From Utricularia gibba (Eukaryota > Plantae > Magnoliophyta), in assembly GCA_002189035.1 (NCBI GenBank), contig CM007992.1:1612001-1676000 (forward strand): a stretch of DNA of 64,000 bases. Reading direction: 5' to 3'. Position numbers and translations under genes: made by a program. Below, piece by piece: positions 8,841 through 60,137 of this stretch (position 1 is the first letter of the stretch; each line of letters begins with the position of its first letter). The notes beneath the pieces were generated by a model. It worked only from the letters and a program-made list of their open reading frames with translations, made no database searches and was not told the origin of the DNA.

Positions 8841-10286
8841 AACAGATTACAGAATTGAAGATGTGCTATCAGATCTTGTTCTTGCTGCCAGATGATCCTG
8901 TCTTGAAACTTGTCTTTTTTGTTGTGTAAGAAGCAAACAAAACAAGGACTTTAGATCTTTTTTTGTTGTCTTTTTTGGTATCAGATCTTTTTTGTTGAAA
9001 CTTGTTCTTTAGATCTTTTGTTATCTGAGTATGTTTCTCTAACCAAACAAGGACTGATCCCTGAACCTATTATTCTATGTGCCGCTCTGTCACCACTCCC
9101 AACTCGCACTATCCTGTATCTGATACAACAAAAGGGCACATCTGGCTTCTCCAGTAACCATATGGGCTGAAGTTTCTCGGCGATTAAGCAGTGTTGAAGA
9201 GGCCAGCAGCACACCAACGGCTCTTCGGAGAGTCCTTATGGTTTGACTAAGAAACTACAGGGGACATTTCCTCTTTTTCTTCACATCTGGTGCTTTCGAT
9301 TGGATCTACCGCATCTACTTGTCTCCAGCTTTTTTCCCTTCCTTTATTCGCTTAAAATTGGAAAGAAACTGCAGGGTGAATCCAGATGATTAAGAAACGT
9401 TTGGCATAATTCCCAGATGCTAAAATTAGTCCTAGCATTCCATCATCTTGAATGATGACCATCCCCTTGTCGACCCATCGATCTTTTTCCAGGTTCCCAT
9501 TCAGATGCTACTAAGTAGTAGCCAGACCAAGTTGTACAATCCATTTGCTGGTCCAAGCATTTCCACATAACTCAACACCTCATTGTTTGACTTTCATGTT
9601 TTTCACTTTCAGACTGTGCATTAACTCGTACGGGTTCTGAACTTTCCAACATCCCTTTCTTATATTTAAAAGCAGCAATCTGGTGAACTTGTTTGGACTT
9701 TACATGAGACCATATTTAGTAATTTTCGGAAATACTAACATTATTTTTCGAAAATCATTTTTGTTTTTATAGAAATGATTTATTTGAGTAAATTTTATGT
9801 TGTAAAAATTACATTTAAAAAATTCTGTTTTCTCATAAAAATTCAGTAAAAGAAACCACGTCATCCAGAAATCAATAAATATACTCATACTCATGTTCTA
9901 CTTCTGCAGTCAGAACACATCTAATAAACATTTCATCTGTGGGCGATGGAGTTTCTGAAGAATGTTTATCTACATTTGAGTTTGCGATAACACCTTTTTC
10001 GGGGTTCATTCACGACTGGTGGTTATGCGGTTTCGTGGGTATAGAAGCGAACAAAAACATCTGTTGCAGATGAATCCGGCCCAGCTCATTCTGAAAGCAA
10101 AAGGACAAAAACCTGGTCCCAATAAACGAGTTATGCTTCCCATATGAGTAACTGTAATAATGTGAAGATGGACACTTTATTCTCCTACCACGTTGTGCGA
10201 GGGCAAAATCCTTGCTTCTTCGTCTTCTTCCTCTGCTGCTGTTGAGGTGCCGCTTTCTGGAAAATTTACCCAGATTTGCTGTAAAA

Positions 10287-52099: not shown

Positions 52100-53351
52100 T
52101 CATTCTGGTTTACCGATGGTTTTGGCAACATCGAGGACGAAGCGGTACTTGACGTCGCCTCTTTTTAAGCGTTCCATTGCCTGGTTCACGTACTCCACTC
52201 GAATGAGCTCAACATCCGCGTACACCTTATTCGCCGCCGCGAAATCTATCATCTCCTGGGTCTCTTTAATCCCTCCGATCAAGCTCCCACCCAGAGTCTT
52301 CCGCCCCGCCACCAGCGGGAAAACCTTAACCTCCATCTTCTCCGGCACCCCCAAAATCACCATCTTCCCGTGTGGCTTCAGCAAGTTTATCAACTCCGAC
52401 ACCGGATGTACTGCGGACACAGTGTCGATTATCCCATCCATCGTCCCGGCCGCCGCTTTCATCTCCTCCGTGTCCTCTCTGGTTACGATAACCCTGTCGG
52501 CCCCGAGTTCTTCGACGGCGGGCTTCCTCTTTTGTGGGGACGAGGTGATGACGGTCACTTTGGACCCGAAAGCTTTCGCGAATTTCACGGCTATGTGCCC
52601 CAGACCCCCCAGCCCGACGACACCGATATGGAGGTTGGGCTTGTCGAGTCCGTAGTATCTCATCGCGCTGTACGTCGTCGTTCCGGCGCATAGCAGCGGC
52701 GCCCCGCGGTCCAGAGGGAGGCCTTCCGGCCACCGGATTACGAAGTTCTCGTCAACCACGAGGATGTCCGAGTACCCACCGAAAGTCACCCTCCGGTCGG
52801 CGCCCTCGCTGTTGTAAGTATACACCTGCAACACACACAAAACACAGTGGGTATTTTTCAAAAAAAGCCCCCCGAGTAACCTAAAAGTTGCTGGATTCAT
52901 CTCCTTTAATAAAAGGATTTCTCACCGTTTGGGAGCAATAATTCTCCAGATGATTACGGCACTGATAGCATTTTCTGCAGGATCCCACCATGCAGCCGAC
53001 TCCAATCTTGTCACCTATCTTCACCTTTTGGACCTTTGAACCCACTTCAGTAACCGACCCGACAATCTCATGACCCGGCACAAGGGGGTAACTCGAGATT
53101 CCCAACTCGTTCCTGGCAAGATGAAGATCCGAGTGACAGATCCCACAGTAGAGGATGTTAAGCTTCACGTCATGCTCCCCAGTCCTTCGCCTCGAGAACT
53201 TGAAGGATGAGAGCGTCCCGGATGGATCCCAAGCGGCCCACCCGAATGCCTTCACAGGGTACAAATCTTCCCAATAAGTGCTGCTGGCCTTCTCTATCCC
53301 TGGAGGCGAGACGGAAGAAAGGGATTGGTAAAATTTGTAGGGTATGCGCAT
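52100..53351 (-). CDS. CAD: Cinnamyl-alcohol-dehydrogenase-like MDR (class II CAD / 8HGO / mannitol dehydrogenase type), 2 exons
   Basis: [47 protein letters not shown]. Single intron 52826-52925. Start codon uncertain. Confidence 0.93.
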
Positions 53352-53569
53352 CGCTGCTTTGCAGACTCTGCAGATGAACGTCATAGTTCTTTTTTGTTTT
53401 TTTTCGCCGTGAACCTTAACTCTAAAATACCATTTTATAGCTAAAGCAAGGGAGAGGTATTGTTGTTTTGATGAAGACGAGGATTCTGGTTCTTTGCTTT
53501 CCTGCGGAAGAGGAGATGGAATGTCTGTGACTGCAGTTTTCTGAAGACCGTCTGCATGCGGATGCATCT

Positions 53570-53733
53570 AATCTGCTCAAGAAAGGGATCACCAATTTGT
53601 TATTGTGATGGGCCCGTTATTATATTGGGCCTTTTCTAGAACACTGTACGGTCAGCCCATGTCAGAACCCACAAATCCCATTTTGGAGGAGGAGACTTCC
53701 ATTTTACTTCTACGTTTTGTGTGCGTGTGTGCA
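53570..53733. promoter_or_regulatory. Short divergent promoter between CAD and the pseudouridine synthase, with site II motifs
   Basis: TGGGCC at ~53609 and ~53626 and AGCCCA at ~53654, between head-to-head start codons ~380 bp apart. Confidence 0.55.
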
Positions 53734-56700
53734 ATGCTTCTACGTTGTTATCGGAGCTCTGGGATGTTGGCCTTCCAGTCTCTGTCTGGGTGCTCAGCGA
53801 GGCCAGTGAATAGCATATTCCGGATAAATTCTTCCGTTCTCAGGATTGTGTGCAATGCTTGTTCGAGTTCAAATTCCTTTCTTGGTTTGACCTCCAGCCA
53901 CGGTGGCTGCAAGCTTTCTGGTCAGCCTTCAGGTTACTCTGGTGTTAGAATCGAAGAAACGGTGAGTGTGGAGTCTGGGAAGCATAGATTGGATACATGG
54001 ATTTCTTCTCGGATTGATGGGATCAGTAGGGCTAGAGTTCAAGCTAGCATCCGCTCTGGATTGGTGTTTGTCAATGGAAGCGTTGTAAATAAGGTTCCTG
54101 GATTTTTCTCCTTTTTGTTCTTGTGGCTTTTATGCTTAGTACTACTAAGTTAGTAGTATGATTTTGTTATGAATATGTAATGGTGAATTGAAGGTTTCCT
54201 ACTTAGTGAGACATGGGGACAAAGTGAGTTGCACCGTGGCCGAGTTGCAGCCTTTGAGAGCTGAACCCGAGGACATTCCACTGGATATTGTACATGAAGA
54301 CGAGCACGTTCTAGTGGTCAATAAACCTGCACACATGGTGATTCCTTCACACGGTGCTTTTTCTTCGCTGAGTTTGTGAAGGGCCGCCACACTTAGGGAA
54401 TTGACTGAAACATTCTGTGAAATTGCTTCATTTTCTTCCGATTTAATTCTTTGGCAGTGCAGCATTGTTGTTTGCTTGTCATAGCAAACAACGCTGTGTA
54501 AATTTTCTAAACCTTTTTGCGAAGTTTCTCGTTAATTTGATGATATTATGGGTGATAAGAACTCATTCATATCAAGTTTTCCCAATTTCAGGTTGTGCAT
54601 CCAGCACCCGGAAATGCATCTGGTACACTTGTGAATGGAATTCTCGGTCATTGTCAGCTTCCCACTCCATATTTCAGTCCAGATCCAGAGATTGATGGTG
54701 ATTCCTCTGATGAAATCACTGCCGAATCTATTCATAGAATTCGTGATGGAAGCATCAATTTTGGCTTATCCGAGGATGTGCGCCCTGGAATCGTGCACAG
54801 ATTAGATAAAGGGACCAGTGGATTGCTTGTCATTGCAAAGGTAATCATTATCCGGGCTACAAAAATCTCAAGAAACTTCTGAATTTTGTTTTTGGTGTTA
54901 TCCTTCCTGACGCAGGATGAATATTCACACTCCCATTTAGCTAAACAGTTTAAGGAACACACTATTAAGAGAGTTTACGTGAGTATTACCTGTGGTGTCC
55001 CCTCATCTGACTCTGGACTTGTAGAAGTACCTGTTGGTCGTGATCCAAACAACAGGATTCGCATGGCTGCCATTCCTGGGTCTGTTGCTAATGGAAAGTC
55101 CCGCCGTGCTGTTAGTAGGTGATCACAGTTTTTTCAAATTTGATCGTTGTCCCTATAGTTCGTTTTTTAAGTCAAATCTATTGCACTTCTAAGCTGATCG
55201 GTAGTTACATTTTTGAAGTAATCTTTTGCAGTCGGAGTATGTCTTCTATGATAAATTCTAAAGCTTCTTCTCACAGTAACTCCCTAGTTCAGATAGTTGA
55301 TTGCTGTGAGCCCAATAAATCGAAAGTTCATAACCCTTACACCCTTTGTGGTCTGACGAATGAGGAACCAGTGACATCCGTTGGTCATCATTCAAGACTT
55401 GAATCTGGTTTTGTTCATAATAGTGAAGTTAACAGCCGAGTTGGAGCTCAGCTTTCAATTTATTTTGACCTCCTGCATAGACTGAGTAACTCAAATGCAT
55501 CACTTTGCCAAATACGGCAGACCCATGCAATACTACTCAGAACAGGCCTTCTTGATATCTGCAAGTGCAGCAACAAGCTACTGTCTCTTTATGCCAGTCA
55601 AAAACACTTTTCTGATGCCAAAAGCCTTCTTCGTTCTATTTTACACCCAGATTCTCATGCTTTCACCACCCTTATTACTTCGTTTTCTAAAGCTAGCGAT
55701 TCTGAGAGCACTATCATTTTATTTTCTGAAATGCTTAGGATTGGACTTTTCCCAGATGCTCATGTTTTACCTAGTGTAATCAGGGCGTGCGCTGGAATGT
55801 TAGTTTTTGAAATTGGAAAACAGGCTCATGGGTTTTCTGTAGCATCTGGGCTGTTTTTGGATCCTTTTGTAGAATCTTCTTTGGTTCATTTCTATGTGAG
55901 AATTGGAGAGCTAAGTGATGCTAAAAAATTGTTCTGCAATATGGTTGAGAAGGATGTTGTTTCTTGGAGTGCCTTAGCTGCTGCTTATGCAAGGAAAGGT
56001 GATATAATTAATGCAAAAGGGGTATTTGATGCAGTTGAGTGTCTTGGGTTTGAGCCAAATATTGTGTCATGGAATGGTATGATTGCAGGGTTCAATCAAA
56101 GTGGGTGTTTCCAGGATGCAATTTCAATGTTTCAGCAGATGCATTCGCGTGGATTTCCCTCTGATGGGACTAATATCTCTAGTGTTCTTCCTGCAATAGG
56201 TAACTTGGGATATTTGAATTTGGGCACTCAAATTCATGGGCATGTGATCAAGGGCGGTTTTGCTGGTGATAAGTGTATTGTAAGTGCACTTATTTATATG
56301 TATGGCAAGTGTGGGAATGCTTCCGCGATGCTGCTTGTATTTGAAGATATGGACCGAATTGATGTTGGTGTCTGTAATGCCCTAATTGCAGGGCTGGCTC
56401 AACACGGTCTTTTTGACAAGGCACTCAGTACATTTGAGCAACTGCGTCACCTTGGAATGGAAAACGTAGTTTCCTGGACTTCAGTGATAGCAGGCTGCTC
56501 ACAGCATGGAAGGGATATTGAGGCTTTGAGGCTTTTCAGAGAAATGCAGGCCTCTGGTGTGAAACCAAACTCAGTGACCATACCTTGCTTGCTTCCAGCT
56601 TGCGGAAATATTGCAGCTCTCATGTATGGAAAAGCTGTGCATTGTTTTTCTCTCAGAAGCTACTTATCAGATGATGTTTATGTTGGCAGTGCTTTGATAG

Positions 56701-58579
56701 ACATGTATGCGAATTGTGGAAAGCTTCAGGCTGCACGATGCTTCTTTGAAAGGATGAGCGTTAGAAATCTAGTTTGCTGGAATGCATTACTGGGTGCATA
56801 TTCGATGCATGGGAAGGCCAAGGAAGCTATTGAAATCTTTATCCGGATGCAGAGATGTGGAGAGAAACCGGATTCGGTTAGCTACACCAGCCTCTTATCT
56901 GCATGTAGCCAAGGTGGCCTTATTGACGAAGGGTATCAGTACTTTGAATGCATGTCCAGAGATCATGGCATACAGCCTAGATTAGAGCATTATGCATGTA
57001 TAGTGAGCTTGCATGGTCGTGCAGGAAAGCTCGAAGAAGCTTGTTCTATGATCAAGAACATGCCTTTTGAGCCGGATGCTTGTGTGTGGGGAGCATTGTT
57101 AAGTTCCTGTGCCCTTCATATGAATATGCACTTGGGTGAGATTGCTGCAGCCAAGTTGTTTGAACTAGAACCTATGAATCCTGGTAACTATATTCTGCTT
57201 TCTAATATTTATGCTTCTAAAAGGAAATGGAAGGAAGTGAACAGGGTTAGAGATATGATGAATGCGAAGGGAATGAGGAAGAATCCTGGTTGCAGTTGGA
57301 TTGAGATAAAGAATAAACTTTATATGGTTTTGGCTGGTGACAAATCGCTTCCTGGATTGCCCCAAATACTAGAGAAATTAACCATATTCAACCAGGAAAT
57401 GAAGAAAGCTGGTTACGCTCCAAATACTGATCATGTGTTGCAAGATGTTGAGGAACAGGAAGAGAAGGAGTACATTTTATGTGGACACAGTGAGAAGTTG
57501 GCTGTTGTTTTTGGAATTCTGAATACTAGCCAAGGTTCTCCTCTTAGAGTTACAAAGAACCTAAGAATTTGTGGGGACTGCCATGCTGTAATCAAATTTA
57601 TATCTGGATTTGAGCACAGAGAAATATCTGTCAGAGACGCTAATCGCTATCATCACTTTAAAGAAGGTGTCTGCACTTGTGGGGATTATTGGTGACGGAT
57701 TTTTGGGTGTAATACCAGTCTGAAGTTTCGGTGATATTCACATCTATCTGTTCAGTCCTGTGTTAAGCTTCACTAGCATTTTGACCACTTACCCGATCAG
57801 GTCGGTCTTCGAAACCGCGCCAGACGTTCATGAGTTAAACCAATCAAACTGGCCTAAGCCAGTGCATTACCTAAGTTGTGGTGGGTAAAAGCGGCCCTGA
57901 ATTGATTGCACAGGTTTAACTGAGCATTTAGCTGCAGTATAACAAAATACAGTACTACTTAGAGCTTAGGTTTCACTTACTGTAATTATACTGGATGCCC
58001 CTTGACAGTTACCTTTTCAAACCATTTAGCATTTCTCTACCAACAAGCTACTGTTAAATATGACCTCTTCTCTTGTATCAGGTACAAAGTGCTCGAAATT
58101 CTAGCTGGTGGAGTTGTGCACTGGTAGAATGGAGGCTAGAAACTGGGCGCACTCATCAAGTAACCAACCTTGTTACCTACCTTCTTTACATAATTCATCA
58201 TGCAAGCGTAACTCCTGTTGCCTAGCTAGATCCGAGCCCATGCGAAGTACCTTGGCAACCCTCTCCTGGGAGATGATGTGTATGGGGGAACTAACAGCAT
58301 GGCACTGTCACTACTTCGGTCCAGAAACCCACGAACAGAGGATGAGAAATTCGTGCAGATTGTTGATTCGTTAGACAGACCATGTTTACATGCATTTGTT
58401 CTTGGGTATTGTGATAAAGGATTGCTCTTTCATCTCCATGTATGCTGCAAGCTCGATTACTAATCACTTGCATTGATTTCAGGTTCGAGCATCCGCACAC
58501 AGGGGAGAACCTCAACTTTTCTGTGAAGCCGCCCTCCGATTTCGAACGAGTTCTGGGTCAGCTTCGTGGCATTAGATGA
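53734..58579 (+). CDS. RluA/RluD-family RNA pseudouridine synthase, probably plastid-targeted, 7 exons, with a 1-nt frameshift in exon 5
   Basis: Exons 53734-54093, 54194-54337, 54592-54840, 54916-55118, 58082-58159, 58230-~58408 and ~58483-58579. S4 domain (RLDTWISSRIDGISRARVQ), VVNKPAH, VHRLDKGTSG, LETGRTHQ/IRAH, RPCLHA. Confidence 0.9.
55239..57695 (+). CDS. PLS-class PPR protein with E/E+/DYW domain, nested in intron 4 of the pseudouridine synthase
   Basis: Intronless ORF with PPR arrays (VVSWS, VSWNGMI, LEHYACIV), PGCSWIE, HSEKLA, KNLRICGDCH and terminal DYW. It resembles At1g20230 as I recall it. The ORF-track start at 55119 is the GT splice donor; first ATG is 55239. Confidence 0.95.
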   Translation: MSSMINSKASSHSNSLVQIVDCCEPNKSKVHNPYTLCGLTNEEPVTSVGHHSRLESGFVHNSEVNSRVGAQLSIYFDLLHRLSNSNASLCQIRQTHAILLRTGLLDICKCSNKLLSLYASQKHFSDAKSLLRSILHPDSHAFTTLITSFSKASDSESTIILFSEMLRIGLFPDAHVLPSVIRACAGMLVFEIGKQAHGFSVASGLFLDPFVESSLVHFYVRIGELSDAKKLFCNMVEKDVVSWSALAAAYARKGDIINAKGVFDAVECLGFEPNIVSWNGMIAGFNQSGCFQDAISMFQQMHSRGFPSDGTNISSVLPAIGNLGYLNLGTQIHGHVIKGGFAGDKCIVSALIYMYGKCGNASAMLLVFEDMDRIDVGVCNALIAGLAQHGLFDKALSTFEQLRHLGMENVVSWTSVIAGCSQHGRDIEALRLFREMQASGVKPNSVTIPCLLPACGNIAALMYGKAVHCFSLRSYLSDDVYVGSALIDMYANCGKLQAARCFFERMSVRNLVCWNALLGAYSMHGKAKEAIEIFIRMQRCGEKPDSVSYTSLLSACSQGGLIDEGYQYFECMSRDHGIQPRLEHYACIVSLHGRAGKLEEACSMIKNMPFEPDACVWGALLSSCALHMNMHLGEIAAAKLFELEPMNPGNYILLSNIYASKRKWKEVNRVRDMMNAKGMRKNPGCSWIEIKNKLYMVLAGDKSLPGLPQILEKLTIFNQEMKKAGYAPNTDHVLQDVEEQEEKEYILCGHSEKLAVVFGILNTSQGSPLRVTKNLRICGDCHAVIKFISGFEHREISVRDANRYHHFKEGVCTCGDYW

Positions 58580-58679
58580 AATTGAAAGTGCTTGCACTAA
58601 CCTTTGTTGTTACGCGATCCTCGATTTCTCTTTGAAGTGAGATGAGTTTGATGACAGAGTTAAGATTAGCAGCAAGAAG

Positions 58680-59135
58680 TCATTGACGCCTTCTTTCCTT
58701 GTCCAATTCCTGCTTCTGCTTCTCAACGAGCTTGTCGATGGCTGCTTGCACGGCATCTCTTCCGCCGATGAGCAGACGGGTGATGACTTCCGGGTCCTTT
58801 TCGAATCGGGCTTCCTCAAATTCCTTCCGGGCGTTCTCCCTCAGCACGTCGCGCCACAGGACGCCTCGTGAATCCGGCCAGGCGAAGAACCGCGTGGCCC
58901 GTATAATGTCTCGGTAGAGACTTAGGGCTTCGCGTCGGGTGCTGGTGAGCCGCCGCCGGGCCAGGAACTCATCCTCTTCGTCGGTGAGAATCTTCTTGGG
59001 TTCCTTCTGGAGATGCCTATCGAGAAGCTCTTCGATCGTGTCAGGCCCCTCGTGCAATAAACGGCGGCGCAAAGGGTCCCCCAGCCTCCCGGCCGCCAAA
59101 ACTCGCCGGAAGTCACAGATCTTCGCGACGATCAT
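58680..59135 (-). CDS. Complex-1 LYR-family protein
   Basis: RREALSLYRDIIRATRFF..LRENARKEFEEARFEKDPEVITRLLIGG. Confidence 0.9.
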   Translation of the reverse strand: MIVAKICDFRRVLAAGRLGDPLRRRLLHEGPDTIEELLDRHLQKEPKKILTDEEDEFLARRRLTSTRREALSLYRDIIRATRFFAWPDSRGVLWRDVLRENARKEFEEARFEKDPEVITRLLIGGRDAVQAAIDKLVEKQKQELDKERRRQ

Positions 59136-60137
59136 CTCTATAATCTCCGCATCGGTGTTGACATTTTTGGGATTGAGAATTCTGAGACGGCGTATGCAAG
59201 GCTGATGCTATGGGCCCTTTTACAGCCCAACTGAGCAAAACCAGAGATAGATGTCCAATTTAGAAATTCGTAATTAAAATTCCCCATTTAGGTGCCAGAA
59301 AGCTTTCCAAGTGTAAGAGTGAACTAAGAATTTTAATTACATATTATCGAGGGATTAGAAACCTTAGAATAATAATAAATAATCGAATATGGCTCATCAA
59401 TGTAGTGGTATTTAACTAATCATATTGATATTAGTAGAAAATAATATTGATTGAGAGAAAACTGTCTCAAGAGCACCATCATCTACAACACCCACATTCT
59501 ATCGCAACTCTATAAGAGATTTGAGGCAAATCTCAAGAACAATAGTAAAACTTCCACAAGAGAGATGACATATACATATAAAATATATTTGATACATGAA
59601 TGAATTATATAAAAAATAAGAGATAGTATATAACAAGATAATTTTATTTCAATCCTTCAACTTCCATTATTTTATCTCATGTATCAAACATTATGTTTTA
59701 TTTTTCTTATTTAATTATCTCTCTTTATATTTTCTATCAAACATAATCATAAAGATGAATACTCGTAGAAAAAAAAAGAAGGAAAATGAAGTTGGGCTAA
59801 TTGTGCTCGACCCAAACTTAATCAAATGAGCTTTCAGAAATACAAACTTATTCAGGTCCACATGAATAAGACAATTCCTAGATTCGAATTATCTTGTTTA
59901 AAATCTATTGGAGCAATTACTGGTGATATTAATGATTATAAATAAATAAACACAATGAAGAATTTCTTTTTATACACCATCGATATATATTTTACTTACT
60001 GTGCAATAAATACCTCAAGATATATATAAAACAATTCACATACATGCTCAAAAGTGATTTCATGTTGAATTTGAGGTGAACGAAAAATCATACCCATCAA
60101 CCTTTAAAAACTATTTACTTTGCTTCATTTTTGGATT

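Follow-up and report, generated by a model that had tools for sequence, protein, structure and literature searches.

Background

PPR editing factors are nearly all encoded by simple intronless genes that bear their own targeting peptide. A general class of chimeric genes is also known, in which an intronless gene copy inserted in an intron recruits the 5' exons of its host. The locus described here lies in a window of 64,000 nt, i.e., the whole stretch of Utricularia gibba DNA that was analysed (contig CM007992.1). By analogy, it would share with this class an intronic intronless ORF that takes a promoter, a start codon and an N-terminal peptide through a new acceptor. It would differ in that the host is still functional through an alternative distal acceptor, the linker comes from a duplicated host exon 1, and the arrangement has persisted throughout an entire plant order.

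The closest described relatives of the two genes involved are from Arabidopsis. At1g76050 (AtRLUA5, "RNA pseudouridine synthase 2, chloroplastic") is located in the chloroplast or mitochondria by prediction only (PMC8910892), and At1g20230 is mitochondrial by GFP (PMC3858439). An initial reading of the locus from its letters alone (hereafter the sequence-only reading) had called the editing factor plastid-targeted, which these locations do not establish. No editing target of the At1g20230 group was found in the literature searched. Orthologs of At1g20230 elsewhere are stand-alone and intronless with a short N-terminus of their own, whereas here the gene is nested in a PUS2 intron and carries a 90-aa extension. 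Compared with the At1g76050 group elsewhere, a PPR-DYW gene within PUS2 intron 4 is found in core Lamiales only.

The host gene

The host is a 7-exon RluD-type pseudouridine synthase gene whose structure is confirmed by RNA contigs. Its best protein matches are named RNA pseudouridine synthase 2, and sequence comparison identifies it as the ortholog of At1g76050 (PUS2), with the same domain order and the HRLD and TGRTHQIR motifs. An N-terminal S4 domain combined with PseudoU_synth_2 carrying the HRLD catalytic Asp places it in the RluA/RluD type. The full product, from the start codon at 53734 to the stop codon at 58577-58579, has 435 aa. The exons are as follows:

53734..54093, + strand: PUS2 exon 1, with the start codon, Ser-rich N-terminus and start of the S4 domain; RNA joint 54093/54194 in all RNA runs
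54194..54337, + strand: PUS2 exon 2; RNA joints
54592..54840, + strand: PUS2 exon 3, with the catalytic IVHRLD motif; RNA joints
54916..55118, + strand: PUS2 exon 4, ending in phase 2 (AG/GT); RNA joints 54840/54916 and 55118/58082
58082..58159, + strand: PUS2 exon 5, with the ETGRTHQ motif; the window is short of one G after 58109
58230..58405, + strand: PUS2 exon 6; RNA joints
58483..58579, + strand: PUS2 exon 7 and stop codon; RNA joints and translation

Exon 1 is Ser-rich in composition and free of acidic residues up to aa 73, and its N-terminus is a putative organelle-targeting peptide; the Pfam S4 match falls on aa 85-119 of this exon, and that of PseudoU_synth_2 on aa 60-83 of exon 3. 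Every coordinate that the sequence-only reading had given was borne out, as was the phase 2 ending of exon 4 (agt ag/gt).

As written, the window has a frameshifted exon 5 with a TAG at 58125, a consequence of a missing base that the sequence-only reading had overlooked. An additional G after 58109, present in every RNA run and in the DNA contigs of X11 (the probable source sample), restores the exon-5 reading ...AGGSCALVEWRLETGRTHQ, and with it the C-terminal half of PUS2, including the TGRTHQIR motif, is an uninterrupted frame in all RNA contigs and X11 DNA contigs. Because the RNA contigs and X11 DNA carry the extra G, the break is an assembly error rather than the mark of a pseudogene; in practical terms, the 1-nt gap in the window would mislabel PUS2 as a pseudogene.

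The nested PPR-DYW gene

Intron 4 of PUS2 (55119-58081, 2963 nt) is defined by the joint 55118/58082, which is present in X2, X3, X4, X5, X13 and X14. The following features lie within it:

55232..55502, + strand: N-terminal extension of the PPR, about 90 codons; local ATG 55239
55239..57695, + strand: PPR-E-DYW ORF, from ATG 55239 to TGA 57695, 818 aa plus stop; Pfam, motifs and orthology
57411..57692, + strand: DYW deaminase domain (Pfam PF14432 DYW_deaminase, aa 725-818, E=4.7e-41), with HSE, CGDCH and C-terminal DYW

The ORF at 55239-57695 is wholly inside the intron, on the same strand and spanned by the RNA joint; together with the Pfam and motif evidence, this confirms the earlier claim that intron 4 holds a complete same-strand PPR-DYW gene. 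Tandem PPR repeats (Pfam PPR, E=1.7e-62; PPR_2, E=2.7e-62) are followed by E motifs (E_motif, E=2.2e-28) and the deaminase domain, and the zinc-binding signatures HSE (HxE) and CGDCH (CxxCH) and a terminal GDYW can be read in the translation. By its repeats and E/DYW region, the ORF belongs with the PLS-class PPR-DYW RNA editing factors. It is, as judged by protein comparison, the ortholog of Arabidopsis At1g20230: this PPR is 56-63% identical to At1g20230 and its eudicot orthologs (~756 aa) over about 90% of the protein and shares with them an orthologous PPR array, E motifs and the DYW domain. Ka/Ks values of 0.08-0.25 across Lamiales indicate strong constraint on the PPR body.

The 90-aa N-terminal extension is a decayed copy of PUS2 exon 1. 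Exon 1 of Perilla matches the Perilla extension by BLASTP (E=2e-9), and the DNA comparison in Henckelia scores 48, as against 21.8±2.8 for shuffles. The extension evolves with a Ka/Ks of 0.5-0.9, contains no stops and has a single 1-codon indel; it is predicted to be a disordered linker (pLDDT 22-39 in a Henckelia model). The sequence-only reading had described the N-terminus of the PPR as acidic, which is not simply so, as the first 20 residues from ATG 55239 are Ser-rich and lack acidic residues.

Splice signals and RNA evidence in Utricularia gibba

Besides the canonical intron, three further GT..AG or alternative introns are relevant here:

55119..55231, + strand: proposed alternative intron (GT..AG), 113 nt
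56280..56391, + strand: minor 112-nt GT..AG intron in the PPR ORF, frame-shifting, seen in one contig of run X2 only
57801..58081, + strand: alternative 281-nt intron; joint 57800/58082 in X1 and X5, with a matching loose end in X14

The proposed fusion splice would use the same exon-4 donor as the canonical splice. Its acceptor (...tcttttgcAG, with the AG at 55230-55231) is in the PPR frame, as the sequence-only reading had noted, and a ctgat lies 34 nt upstream, at 55194-55198. When 55118 is joined to 55232, the frame is open for 1139 codons, i.e., a 1139-aa fusion; with the 113-nt intron left in, the PUS frame ends at TGA 55120-55122. The intron is 67% A+T and 43% T (exon 4 is 55% A+T). The fusion would cut the PseudoU_synth_2 Pfam domain at position 100 of 152, and the truncated catalytic fragment is modelled with low confidence, so that the doubt already voiced about pseudouridylase activity of the fusion is well founded.

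RNA evidence was available as seven RNA-like contig sets (X1-X5, X13 and X14), i.e., as assembled contigs only, and assemblies drop minor paths. The junction 55118/55232, which the sequence-only reading had proposed as a check, was found in none of the seven sets of assembled contigs, from which minor paths are dropped, and no ORF spanning it occurs among Logan-derived proteins. The path assembled in all seven is unspliced and leads from exon 4 through the retained 113-nt intron into the PPR, and this intron-retaining form is the abundant PPR-bearing RNA. Contigs begin at 53703-53729. A single 3650-nt contig of X1 runs from spliced exons 1-4 into the PPR and reaches 57802; no exon 4-exon 5 joint is present in X1. 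The depth of the PPR region is one third to one times that of the PUS exons, against a depth of zero for the other introns. A new donor at 57800, 105 nt past the PPR stop, is spliced to the exon-5 acceptor, and therefore the PPR RNA runs on into PUS exons 5-7. Thus, exon 4, the PPR and exons 5-7 are co-linear in RNA.

Comparison across Lamiales

The nesting is present in all sampled core Lamiales but absent from Oleaceae and Ilex. In Oleaceae, PUS2 intron 4 is about 790 nt long and empty, and the PUS2 and PPR genes are located side by side; the Ilex PPR ortholog adjoins Alba/thioredoxin genes. In a phylogenetic tree, the Lamiales PPR copies form one clade, sister to the Oleaceae copy, and the nested lineage is the only lineage of the At1g20230 ortholog found in core Lamiales.

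Splice signals were aligned for five genomes from four families. All five have an identical exon-4 donor and an identical TTGCAG acceptor, whereas the intron that separates these cannot be aligned and contains indels whose lengths are not divisible by 3; the frame after the acceptor is open for 819-822 codons. U. gibba and L003 have the local ATG, as do the models of Salvia and Orobanche. Elsewhere it has been replaced by GTG (Genlisea), TTG (Lamiaceae L002) or ATA (Gesneriaceae Henckelia and Primulina), and its position is Leu in Castilleja and Striga. The first Met of the ORF is then residue 238 in Genlisea and 158 in L002, in both cases inside the PPR array.

In two relatives, parts of the host gene at the locus have been lost. 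Primulina eburnea lacks exon 3 as well as exons 5-7, and its PUS function is dead, yet exons 1, 2 and 4 are still in frame into the PPR. At the syntenic Erythranthe locus, a deletion of ~1.9 kb fused the PPR in frame to the true exon 1, Met included, so that one exon encodes all 827 aa. This gene (Erythranthe guttata ABFS82_07G078000) has the same location, flanked by Rft-1 on the upstream side and by relics of PUS exons 6/7 on the downstream side, and its PPR is the same ortholog, headed by the PUS2 N-terminus; it differs in that the fusion is fixed in DNA, the S4 domain, catalytic fragment and splicing have been dispensed with, and an intact PUS2 is located on another chromosome. In relatives throughout the mint order, the PPR is shown to rely on 5' exons of its host, which provide a start codon and a targeting peptide.

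Annotated proteins with S4, PseudoU_synth_2, PPR and DYW domains (1041-1295 aa) are found in at least 10 Lamiales genomes, compared with about 756 aa for non-Lamiales orthologs. Those of Genlisea aurea (M569_00411), Salvia splendens, Henckelia pumila, Orobanche hederae and Perilla frutescens have the same architecture, although all are database predictions from genome annotation. In models that retain the N-extension, the junction is at an identical residue (AVSS/xx), which corresponds to the exon-4 donor and the same acceptor. Annotation pipelines treat this locus inconsistently, as a fusion, as two genes or as truncated models. No publication describing these chimeras was found in the literature searched.

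A probable single transcription unit with two protein outputs

The explanation that we favour, and consider rather probable, is a single transcription unit that yields PUS2 and a chimera of the PUS2 N-terminus with the PPR-DYW protein, depending on acceptor choice. Transcription would start from the PUS2 promoter, and exons 1-4 would be spliced normally. Use of the distal acceptor (58081) by the exon-4 donor (55118/GT) would remove the whole PPR and give the 435-aa organellar RluD-type pseudouridine synthase. Use of the proximal acceptor (55231) would instead extend PUS2 residues 1-319 by some 820 in-frame codons. The PUS2 part would supply a start codon, a targeting peptide and the S4 domain, together with a piece of the catalytic domain that is truncated and probably unfolded; the added codons would encode the 90-aa disordered linker (the exon-1 relic), followed by the PLS PPR array, the E motifs and the intact DYW deaminase domain. 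The PPR would thus borrow the promoter, AUG and targeting peptide of its host, with the PUS fragment as a passenger. In this species, ATG 55239, two codons past the acceptor, may also permit stand-alone translation.

The idea of a single unit with two acceptors is well supported because the donor and acceptor are conserved, the PPR's own ATG has been lost repeatedly, Erythranthe has a single-exon fusion, and Primulina keeps in-frame exons of a dead PUS. Hence, the part of the sequence-only reading that proposed one promoter, alternative splicing and two products gains from the Lamiales comparison but is not matched by a junction in any of the seven contig sets, each of which assembled the unspliced path. 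In U. gibba, removal of the 113-nt intron and the making and import of a fusion protein would follow from the same reasoning. Several observations weigh against the fusion: the fusion proteins are all products of genome annotation, which may reflect a choice made by the software, U. gibba retains an ATG directly after the acceptor, and a contig spanning two genes is no proof of a single transcript. Moreover, a fusion mRNA with 3'-UTR introns should be sensitive to nonsense-mediated decay (NMD), and the Ka/Ks of the N-extension is not low.

Alternatively, the PPR might be an ordinary nested gene that is transcribed from a promoter of its own, located in exon 4 or intron 4, and translated from ATG 55239; we regard this as unlikely, albeit worth serious consideration. 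The continuity with exon 4 would then be due to a start site farther upstream or to overlapping PUS RNA that retains the intron, and the annotated fusions would be prediction artefacts. The presence of the ATG in this plant, L003 and the models of Salvia and Orobanche, the Ser-rich, non-acidic residues that follow it and the fact that only the unspliced form was seen all agree with this. So do the truncated, intron-4-retaining PUS2 isoforms (~313 aa, ending after exon 4) found, with no PPR involved, in annotations of Arabidopsis and of many more plants throughout the angiosperms. Contig depths point in both directions: in X3, exons 1-4 (16) are about as deep as the exon 4-exon 5 joint (15.5), leaving little room for exons 1-4 on the PPR contigs (9.6-11.7), whereas in X14 the joint and the retained path (23.4 + 27.7) together roughly match exons 5-7 (55.1), and X1 has no such joint at all. 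Against an independent gene speak the loss of the ATG in at least three lineages that kept the ORF and acceptor, and the host 5' exons retained in frame with the PPR in Erythranthe and Primulina despite the loss of PUS function at the locus.

It is very improbable that the intron-retaining RNA is itself a working bicistronic mRNA, whose first ORF would be a PUS truncated to 320 codons (stop at TGA 55120) and whose second, the PPR, would be reached at 55239 through reinitiation or internal entry. The abundance of this form in all runs, the single X1 contig from exon 1 to 57802 and the gap of only 116 nt between stop and ATG would suit such a message, yet a contig is no proof of one molecule, established scanning rules give no reason to expect reinitiation after a 320-codon ORF, and the route is closed to species without the ATG. 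That the intronic PPR is a functionless decaying passenger and its RNA nuclear waste, as the frameshifting 112-nt splice in one run might hint, is least credible of all and already contradicted by the conservation data, i.e., the intact 818-codon ORF with complete DYW signatures, the low Ka/Ks of the PPR body across Lamiales and its place as the sole At1g20230 lineage found in core Lamiales.

Implications

A broader extension of the two-acceptor model is put forward only tentatively. In core Lamiales, the At1g20230-type factor would have no start of its own and would be made only as a PUS2 chimera, so that each transcript yields either an rRNA-modifying enzyme or an editing factor, the two being reciprocally regulated and the host's targeting inherited. 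If this is true, the editing factor may have shifted from mitochondria to plastids or to both, and Erythranthe and Primulina would represent later stages, the fusion having been fixed or the host enzyme given up. The locus presents an order-wide case of an editing factor that has come to rely on an unrelated RNA-modification gene for its promoter, start codon and transit peptide. The natural series from Oleaceae (side by side) through most Lamiales (nested) to Erythranthe (fusion fixed in DNA) and Primulina (without the host enzyme) provides a testable model for the passage from nested to chimeric gene, for a swap of organelle targeting and for the coupling of two RNA-modifying activities by one splice decision.

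Host gene and nested reading frame

Sequence reading and an ORF listing of positions 53000-59500 revealed a split RluD-like pseudouridine synthase gene (PUS2) with a long same-strand ORF between coding blocks 4 and 5, in intron 4, that ends in CTCGDYW. The gene model was fixed by contigs from six runs labelled RNA (X1-X5 and X13) and from X14, which is labelled DNA but is spliced; every intron is of the GT..AG type.

Features of the locus (window positions; PUS2 exons from RNA-derived contigs)
52103-53360, minus strand, zinc-type alcohol (CAD-like) dehydrogenase gene, starting ~370 nt before the PUS2 ATG
53734-54093, plus strand, PUS2 exon 1
54194-54337, plus strand, PUS2 exon 2
54592-54840, plus strand, PUS2 exon 3
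54916-55118, plus strand, PUS2 exon 4, ending in phase 2
58082-58159, plus strand, PUS2 exon 5
58230-58405, plus strand, PUS2 exon 6
58483-58579, plus strand, PUS2 exon 7
58683-59135, minus strand, Complex1_LYR gene, converging on the PUS2 3' end with ~100 nt between the stop codons

The spacing of genes around PUS2 is that of a very compact genome, and RNA contigs cross both the PUS2 3' end and the convergent Complex1_LYR gene.

The sequence-only reading had proposed that a PPR-DYW frame lies complete within intron 4 and that an internal acceptor could splice it in frame to exon 4, and this observation was confirmed in every detail. RNA contigs place intron 4 at 55119-58081, after a phase-2 end of exon 4, and the ORF runs from ATG 55239 to TGA 57695 (818 aa), with strong Pfam scores for PPR repeats, the E motif and DYW_deaminase and with the HSE and CGDCH signatures and terminal DYW kept. 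Joining 55118 to 55232, i.e., removing a small intron of 113 nt (55119-55231), yields an uninterrupted frame of 1139 codons. The branch-like ctgat lies 34 nt before the AG of this segment, which is 67% A+T and 43% T (exon 4 is 55% A+T).

As written in the window, exon 5 runs into a TAG at 58125, a point overlooked by the sequence-only reading. One extra G after 58109, in a G-run (window 58109-58110), is present in all RNA contigs and in the contigs of X11, a DNA run that may be the source sample; with it, the exon 5 frame reads ...AGGSCALVEWRLETGRTHQIRAH... and the PUS2 protein has 435 aa. The one-base gap is thus an assembly error in the window, and the same contigs rule out a PUS2 pseudogene caused by an exon-5 frameshift.

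By homolog search, the PPR protein is the ortholog of Arabidopsis At1g20230, a PLS-E-DYW protein that a systematic GFP localisation study placed in mitochondria (PMC3858439). The ortholog of the host gene is At1g76050 (AtRLUA5), listed in databases as "RNA pseudouridine synthase 2, chloroplastic"; its chloroplast and mitochondrial location is predicted (PMC8910892). In the PPR-body tree, Genlisea is the closest partner of the window (100/99) within a core-Lamiales clade (100/100) whose sister is the Oleaceae copy (100/98). The Genlisea contig also carries the same LYR-family gene downstream, on the opposite strand, and a Lentibulariaceae plant is thus the probable source of the window.

Nesting and the small intron in relatives

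Annotated proteins with S4, PseudoU_synth_2, PPR and DYW together (1041-1295 aa) are found, among the closest homologs of the PPR, in at least ten Lamiales species (taxa: Genlisea, Perilla, two Salvia, Henckelia, Castilleja, Phtheirospermum, Phlomoides, Andrographis, Orobanche and Dorcoceras). PPR orthologs outside Lamiales have ~756 aa and are without the first ~70-90 residues. In Ilex, the PPR gene stands alone next to Alba/thioredoxin genes, as in Arabidopsis, and in Abeliophyllum (Oleaceae) it stands alone on the same strand, 8 kb upstream of PUS2, whose intron 4 is ~790 nt long and empty. From this distribution, nesting arose once, after Oleaceae branched off. A different PPR ORF of 551 aa (25-32% identity to the window PPR) is located within PUS2 intron 1 of Abeliophyllum distichum (contig L008, 10670-12322) and is annotated as an 859-aa PPR+PUS fusion; it is a second, independent PPR in the same host gene.

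Annotated models that keep the N-extension (the ~90 codons between the acceptor and the PPR body) share one junction residue, ...AVSS|xx, which in Henckelia matches a 134-nt intron of the same phase. The sequence-only reading had named acceptor conservation in relatives as a check, and this was borne out. When the window was aligned with Genlisea, Henckelia and two genomic contigs of Lamiaceae, neither the exon-4 end and its donor nor the TTGCAG acceptor varied, the interval between them was barely alignable with indels that are not multiples of three, and the stretch examined 3' of the acceptor aligned without gaps; the frame remains open for 819-822 codons from the acceptor in all five genomes. 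Invariant splice sites, an unconserved interior and an open frame beyond would together be the signature of a real intron. Within the otherwise unconserved interior, a short block at ~55168-55181 (TTTTAAGTCAAAT in the window, TTTTAATGTCAAA in Henckelia) is near-identical in both Lamiaceae contigs and not clearly present in Genlisea. The 801-aa RefSeq model of Sesamum indicum, with its "MERPAMLSV" first exon, was uninformative as evidence, since a run of N covers the small-intron acceptor (contig L007, ~10180-10250); this first exon is probably spurious and read from another frame of PUS2 exon 4.

With regard to its origin, the N-extension of Perilla matches the PUS2 exon-1 part of its own protein (E=2e-9, 38% over 52 aa), and in Henckelia exon 1 and the N-extension give a DNA score of 48 (shuffles, 21.8±2.8). 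The homology rests on these two species: protein similarity in the window is weak (E=0.26) but in the same register, and DNA homology of exon 1 and N-extension within the window and within Genlisea is not significant. The N-extension is therefore a decayed duplicate of host exon 1 spanning the transit-peptide end and the S4 start. A simple tandem duplication starting from the Oleaceae gene order fails to yield an exon-1 copy ahead of the PPR in intron 4.

PUS2 isoforms of ~310-330 aa ending directly behind exon 4 have been annotated in many species from monocots to asterids (313 aa in Arabidopsis), which suggests that an isoform made by intron-4 retention or polyadenylation is ancient. Since such isoforms extend across angiosperms, read-through of the exon-4 donor is old, and we infer that the PPR may have exploited an isoform that was already present.

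RNA of this plant

The canonical 55118|58082 joint is seen in X2, X3, X4, X5, X13 and X14, and not in X1. The fusion junction 55118|55232, for which the sequence-only reading had called for junction reads, was found in none of the seven RNA-like contig sets (eight runs searched); these are assembled contigs, which may drop a minor path. Likewise, when residues 205-404 of the Salvia protein P0009 were used as a query for junction-spanning partial ORFs, matches covered the PUS half or the PPR half and never both, and no full-length fusion ORFs were found among Logan assemblies. One candidate for a junction-spanning ORF, P0285, is unspliced read-through, and two candidates for a full-length fusion ORF (L002 and L003) proved to be genomic contigs of Lamiaceae.

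Depth across the PPR-bearing part of intron 4 lies between a third of that of the PUS2 exons and the same value. The other PUS2 introns have zero depth, and RNA from the PPR region is thus stable and does not represent general pre-mRNA. Exon 4 runs unbroken into intron 4 in all runs (contigs starting at 55091 or 55098 reflect the k-1 overlap at the branch), and one 3650-nt contig of X1 comprises spliced exons 1-4 and 54914-57802 with no break. In X1 and X5, the exon-5 acceptor at 58082 is joined to a new donor, 57800|GT, located 105 nt 3' of the PPR stop; a loose end in X14 agrees with this splice, and RNA also passes unspliced from the PPR region into exon 5. In X14, the depth of exons 5-7 (55.1) approximates that of the exon 4-exon 5 joint (23.4) plus that of the retained path (27.7). 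Thus, the PPR RNA extends into the host 3' exons and overlaps at least exon 4. The 57800|58082 splice turns PUS2 exons 5-7 into an intron-bearing 3' UTR of the PPR RNA.

What assembled contigs lack may still be present in the RNA, and a contig that crosses two genes is no proof of a single molecule. Depth is not decisive as to whether exons 1-4 belong to the PPR RNAs because it is contradictory between runs: X3 speaks against, X1 and X14 in favour. It is quite probable that the PPR RNA is part of the PUS2 transcription unit.

In X1 and X13, which come from one study, the ratio of the canonical exon 4-exon 5 joint to the intron-retaining form is strongly different (no canonical joint in X1; 13.5 vs. 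5.7 in X13), as might be expected of a regulated splice choice. In a single X2 contig, a 112-nt GTAAGT..AG intron (56280-56391) is removed from within the PPR ORF, which would shift the frame and truncate the PPR. All PUS2 splice joints are present in X14, which differs from the window by ~20 SNPs and has an adapter-like loose end near 53744; its behaviour is that of RNA from a different strain.

Start codons and derived states

Where the window has its local ATG (55239), Genlisea has GTG, L002 has TTG, both Henckelia and Primulina have ATA, and Castilleja and Striga each have a Leu codon. An in-frame Met first occurs at residue 238 (Genlisea) and residue 158 (L002), both of which fall inside the PPR array, and at residue 43 in Henckelia. 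The N-extension is weakly constrained (Ka/Ks 0.5-0.9), yet it contains no stop and only a single one-codon indel.

At the syntenic locus of Erythranthe guttata (Rft-1 upstream, as in Sesamum; relics of PUS2 exons 6 and 7 downstream), there is a single-exon gene of 827 aa, the first 85 residues of which are true PUS2 exon 1 (65% identity to an intact paralog on another chromosome; 72% DNA identity to Sesamum exon 1) and lead directly to the end of the N-extension and the PPR. A ~1.9-kb deletion made the fusion permanent at the DNA level, discarding S4 and the catalytic fragment. At the host locus of Primulina eburnea, exon 3 (an in-frame loss of 83 codons) and exons 5-7 are gone and the synthase can therefore not be made, yet exons 1, 2 and 4, their splice sites and the small-intron acceptor have stayed in frame with the PPR. 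Ka/Ks between Primulina and Henckelia is 0.29 for exon 1, 0.24 for exon 2 and 1.18 for exon 4, as pairwise values that do not separate the two lineages. The losses of the local ATG, together with the states in Erythranthe and Primulina, are hard to explain unless PPR translation uses the host start codon.

Proposed fusion protein and alternative explanations

The Henckelia fusion was modelled with AlphaFold2 from 105 aligned sequences (mean pLDDT 75). Its N-terminus (residues 1-53) is disordered, the S4 domain is confident (~59-125, pLDDT mostly 81-96), the PUS fragment (~126-300) is poorly modelled with values mostly below 60, the extension (300-370) is disordered at pLDDT 22-39, and the PPR-E-DYW body is again confident. 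The Pfam match to PseudoU_synth_2 covers positions 1-100 of 152 and no further. Along with Erythranthe and Primulina, the model and this partial match suggest that the host would supply promoter, AUG and targeting peptide and that the catalytic fragment would be a passenger. On balance, a chimera made through the alternative acceptor would be expected in this plant, with a fair measure of doubt.

The main rival, an independent nested gene with the PPR translated from ATG 55239, is consistent with the RNA seen in this plant, and the ATG route is still usable in this species, unlike in Genlisea; in view of the lost start codons of relatives, this explanation is possible but doubtful. In the retained form, with the 113-nt segment unspliced, the PUS2 frame ends at TGA 55120-55122, right after exon 4, and bicistronic translation of such a PPR RNA is unlikely. 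Strong purifying selection acts on the PPR body (Ka/Ks 0.08-0.25), and it is most improbable that the PPR is a functionless relic.

The S4-PUS-PPR-DYW fusion proteins in public databases are automatic predictions, and a full-text literature search on At1g20230, on At1g76050 and on PPR proteins in connection with pseudouridine synthases, fusions or nested genes turned up no paper on the arrangement. There is precedent for nested genes, for chimeric genes built by recruiting host exons and for PPR proteins that carry extra domains. The new element, with the fusion junction not found in the contigs of this plant, would be the coupling of an editing factor to a pseudouridine synthase by alternative splicing across a whole order, for which natural derived states exist.
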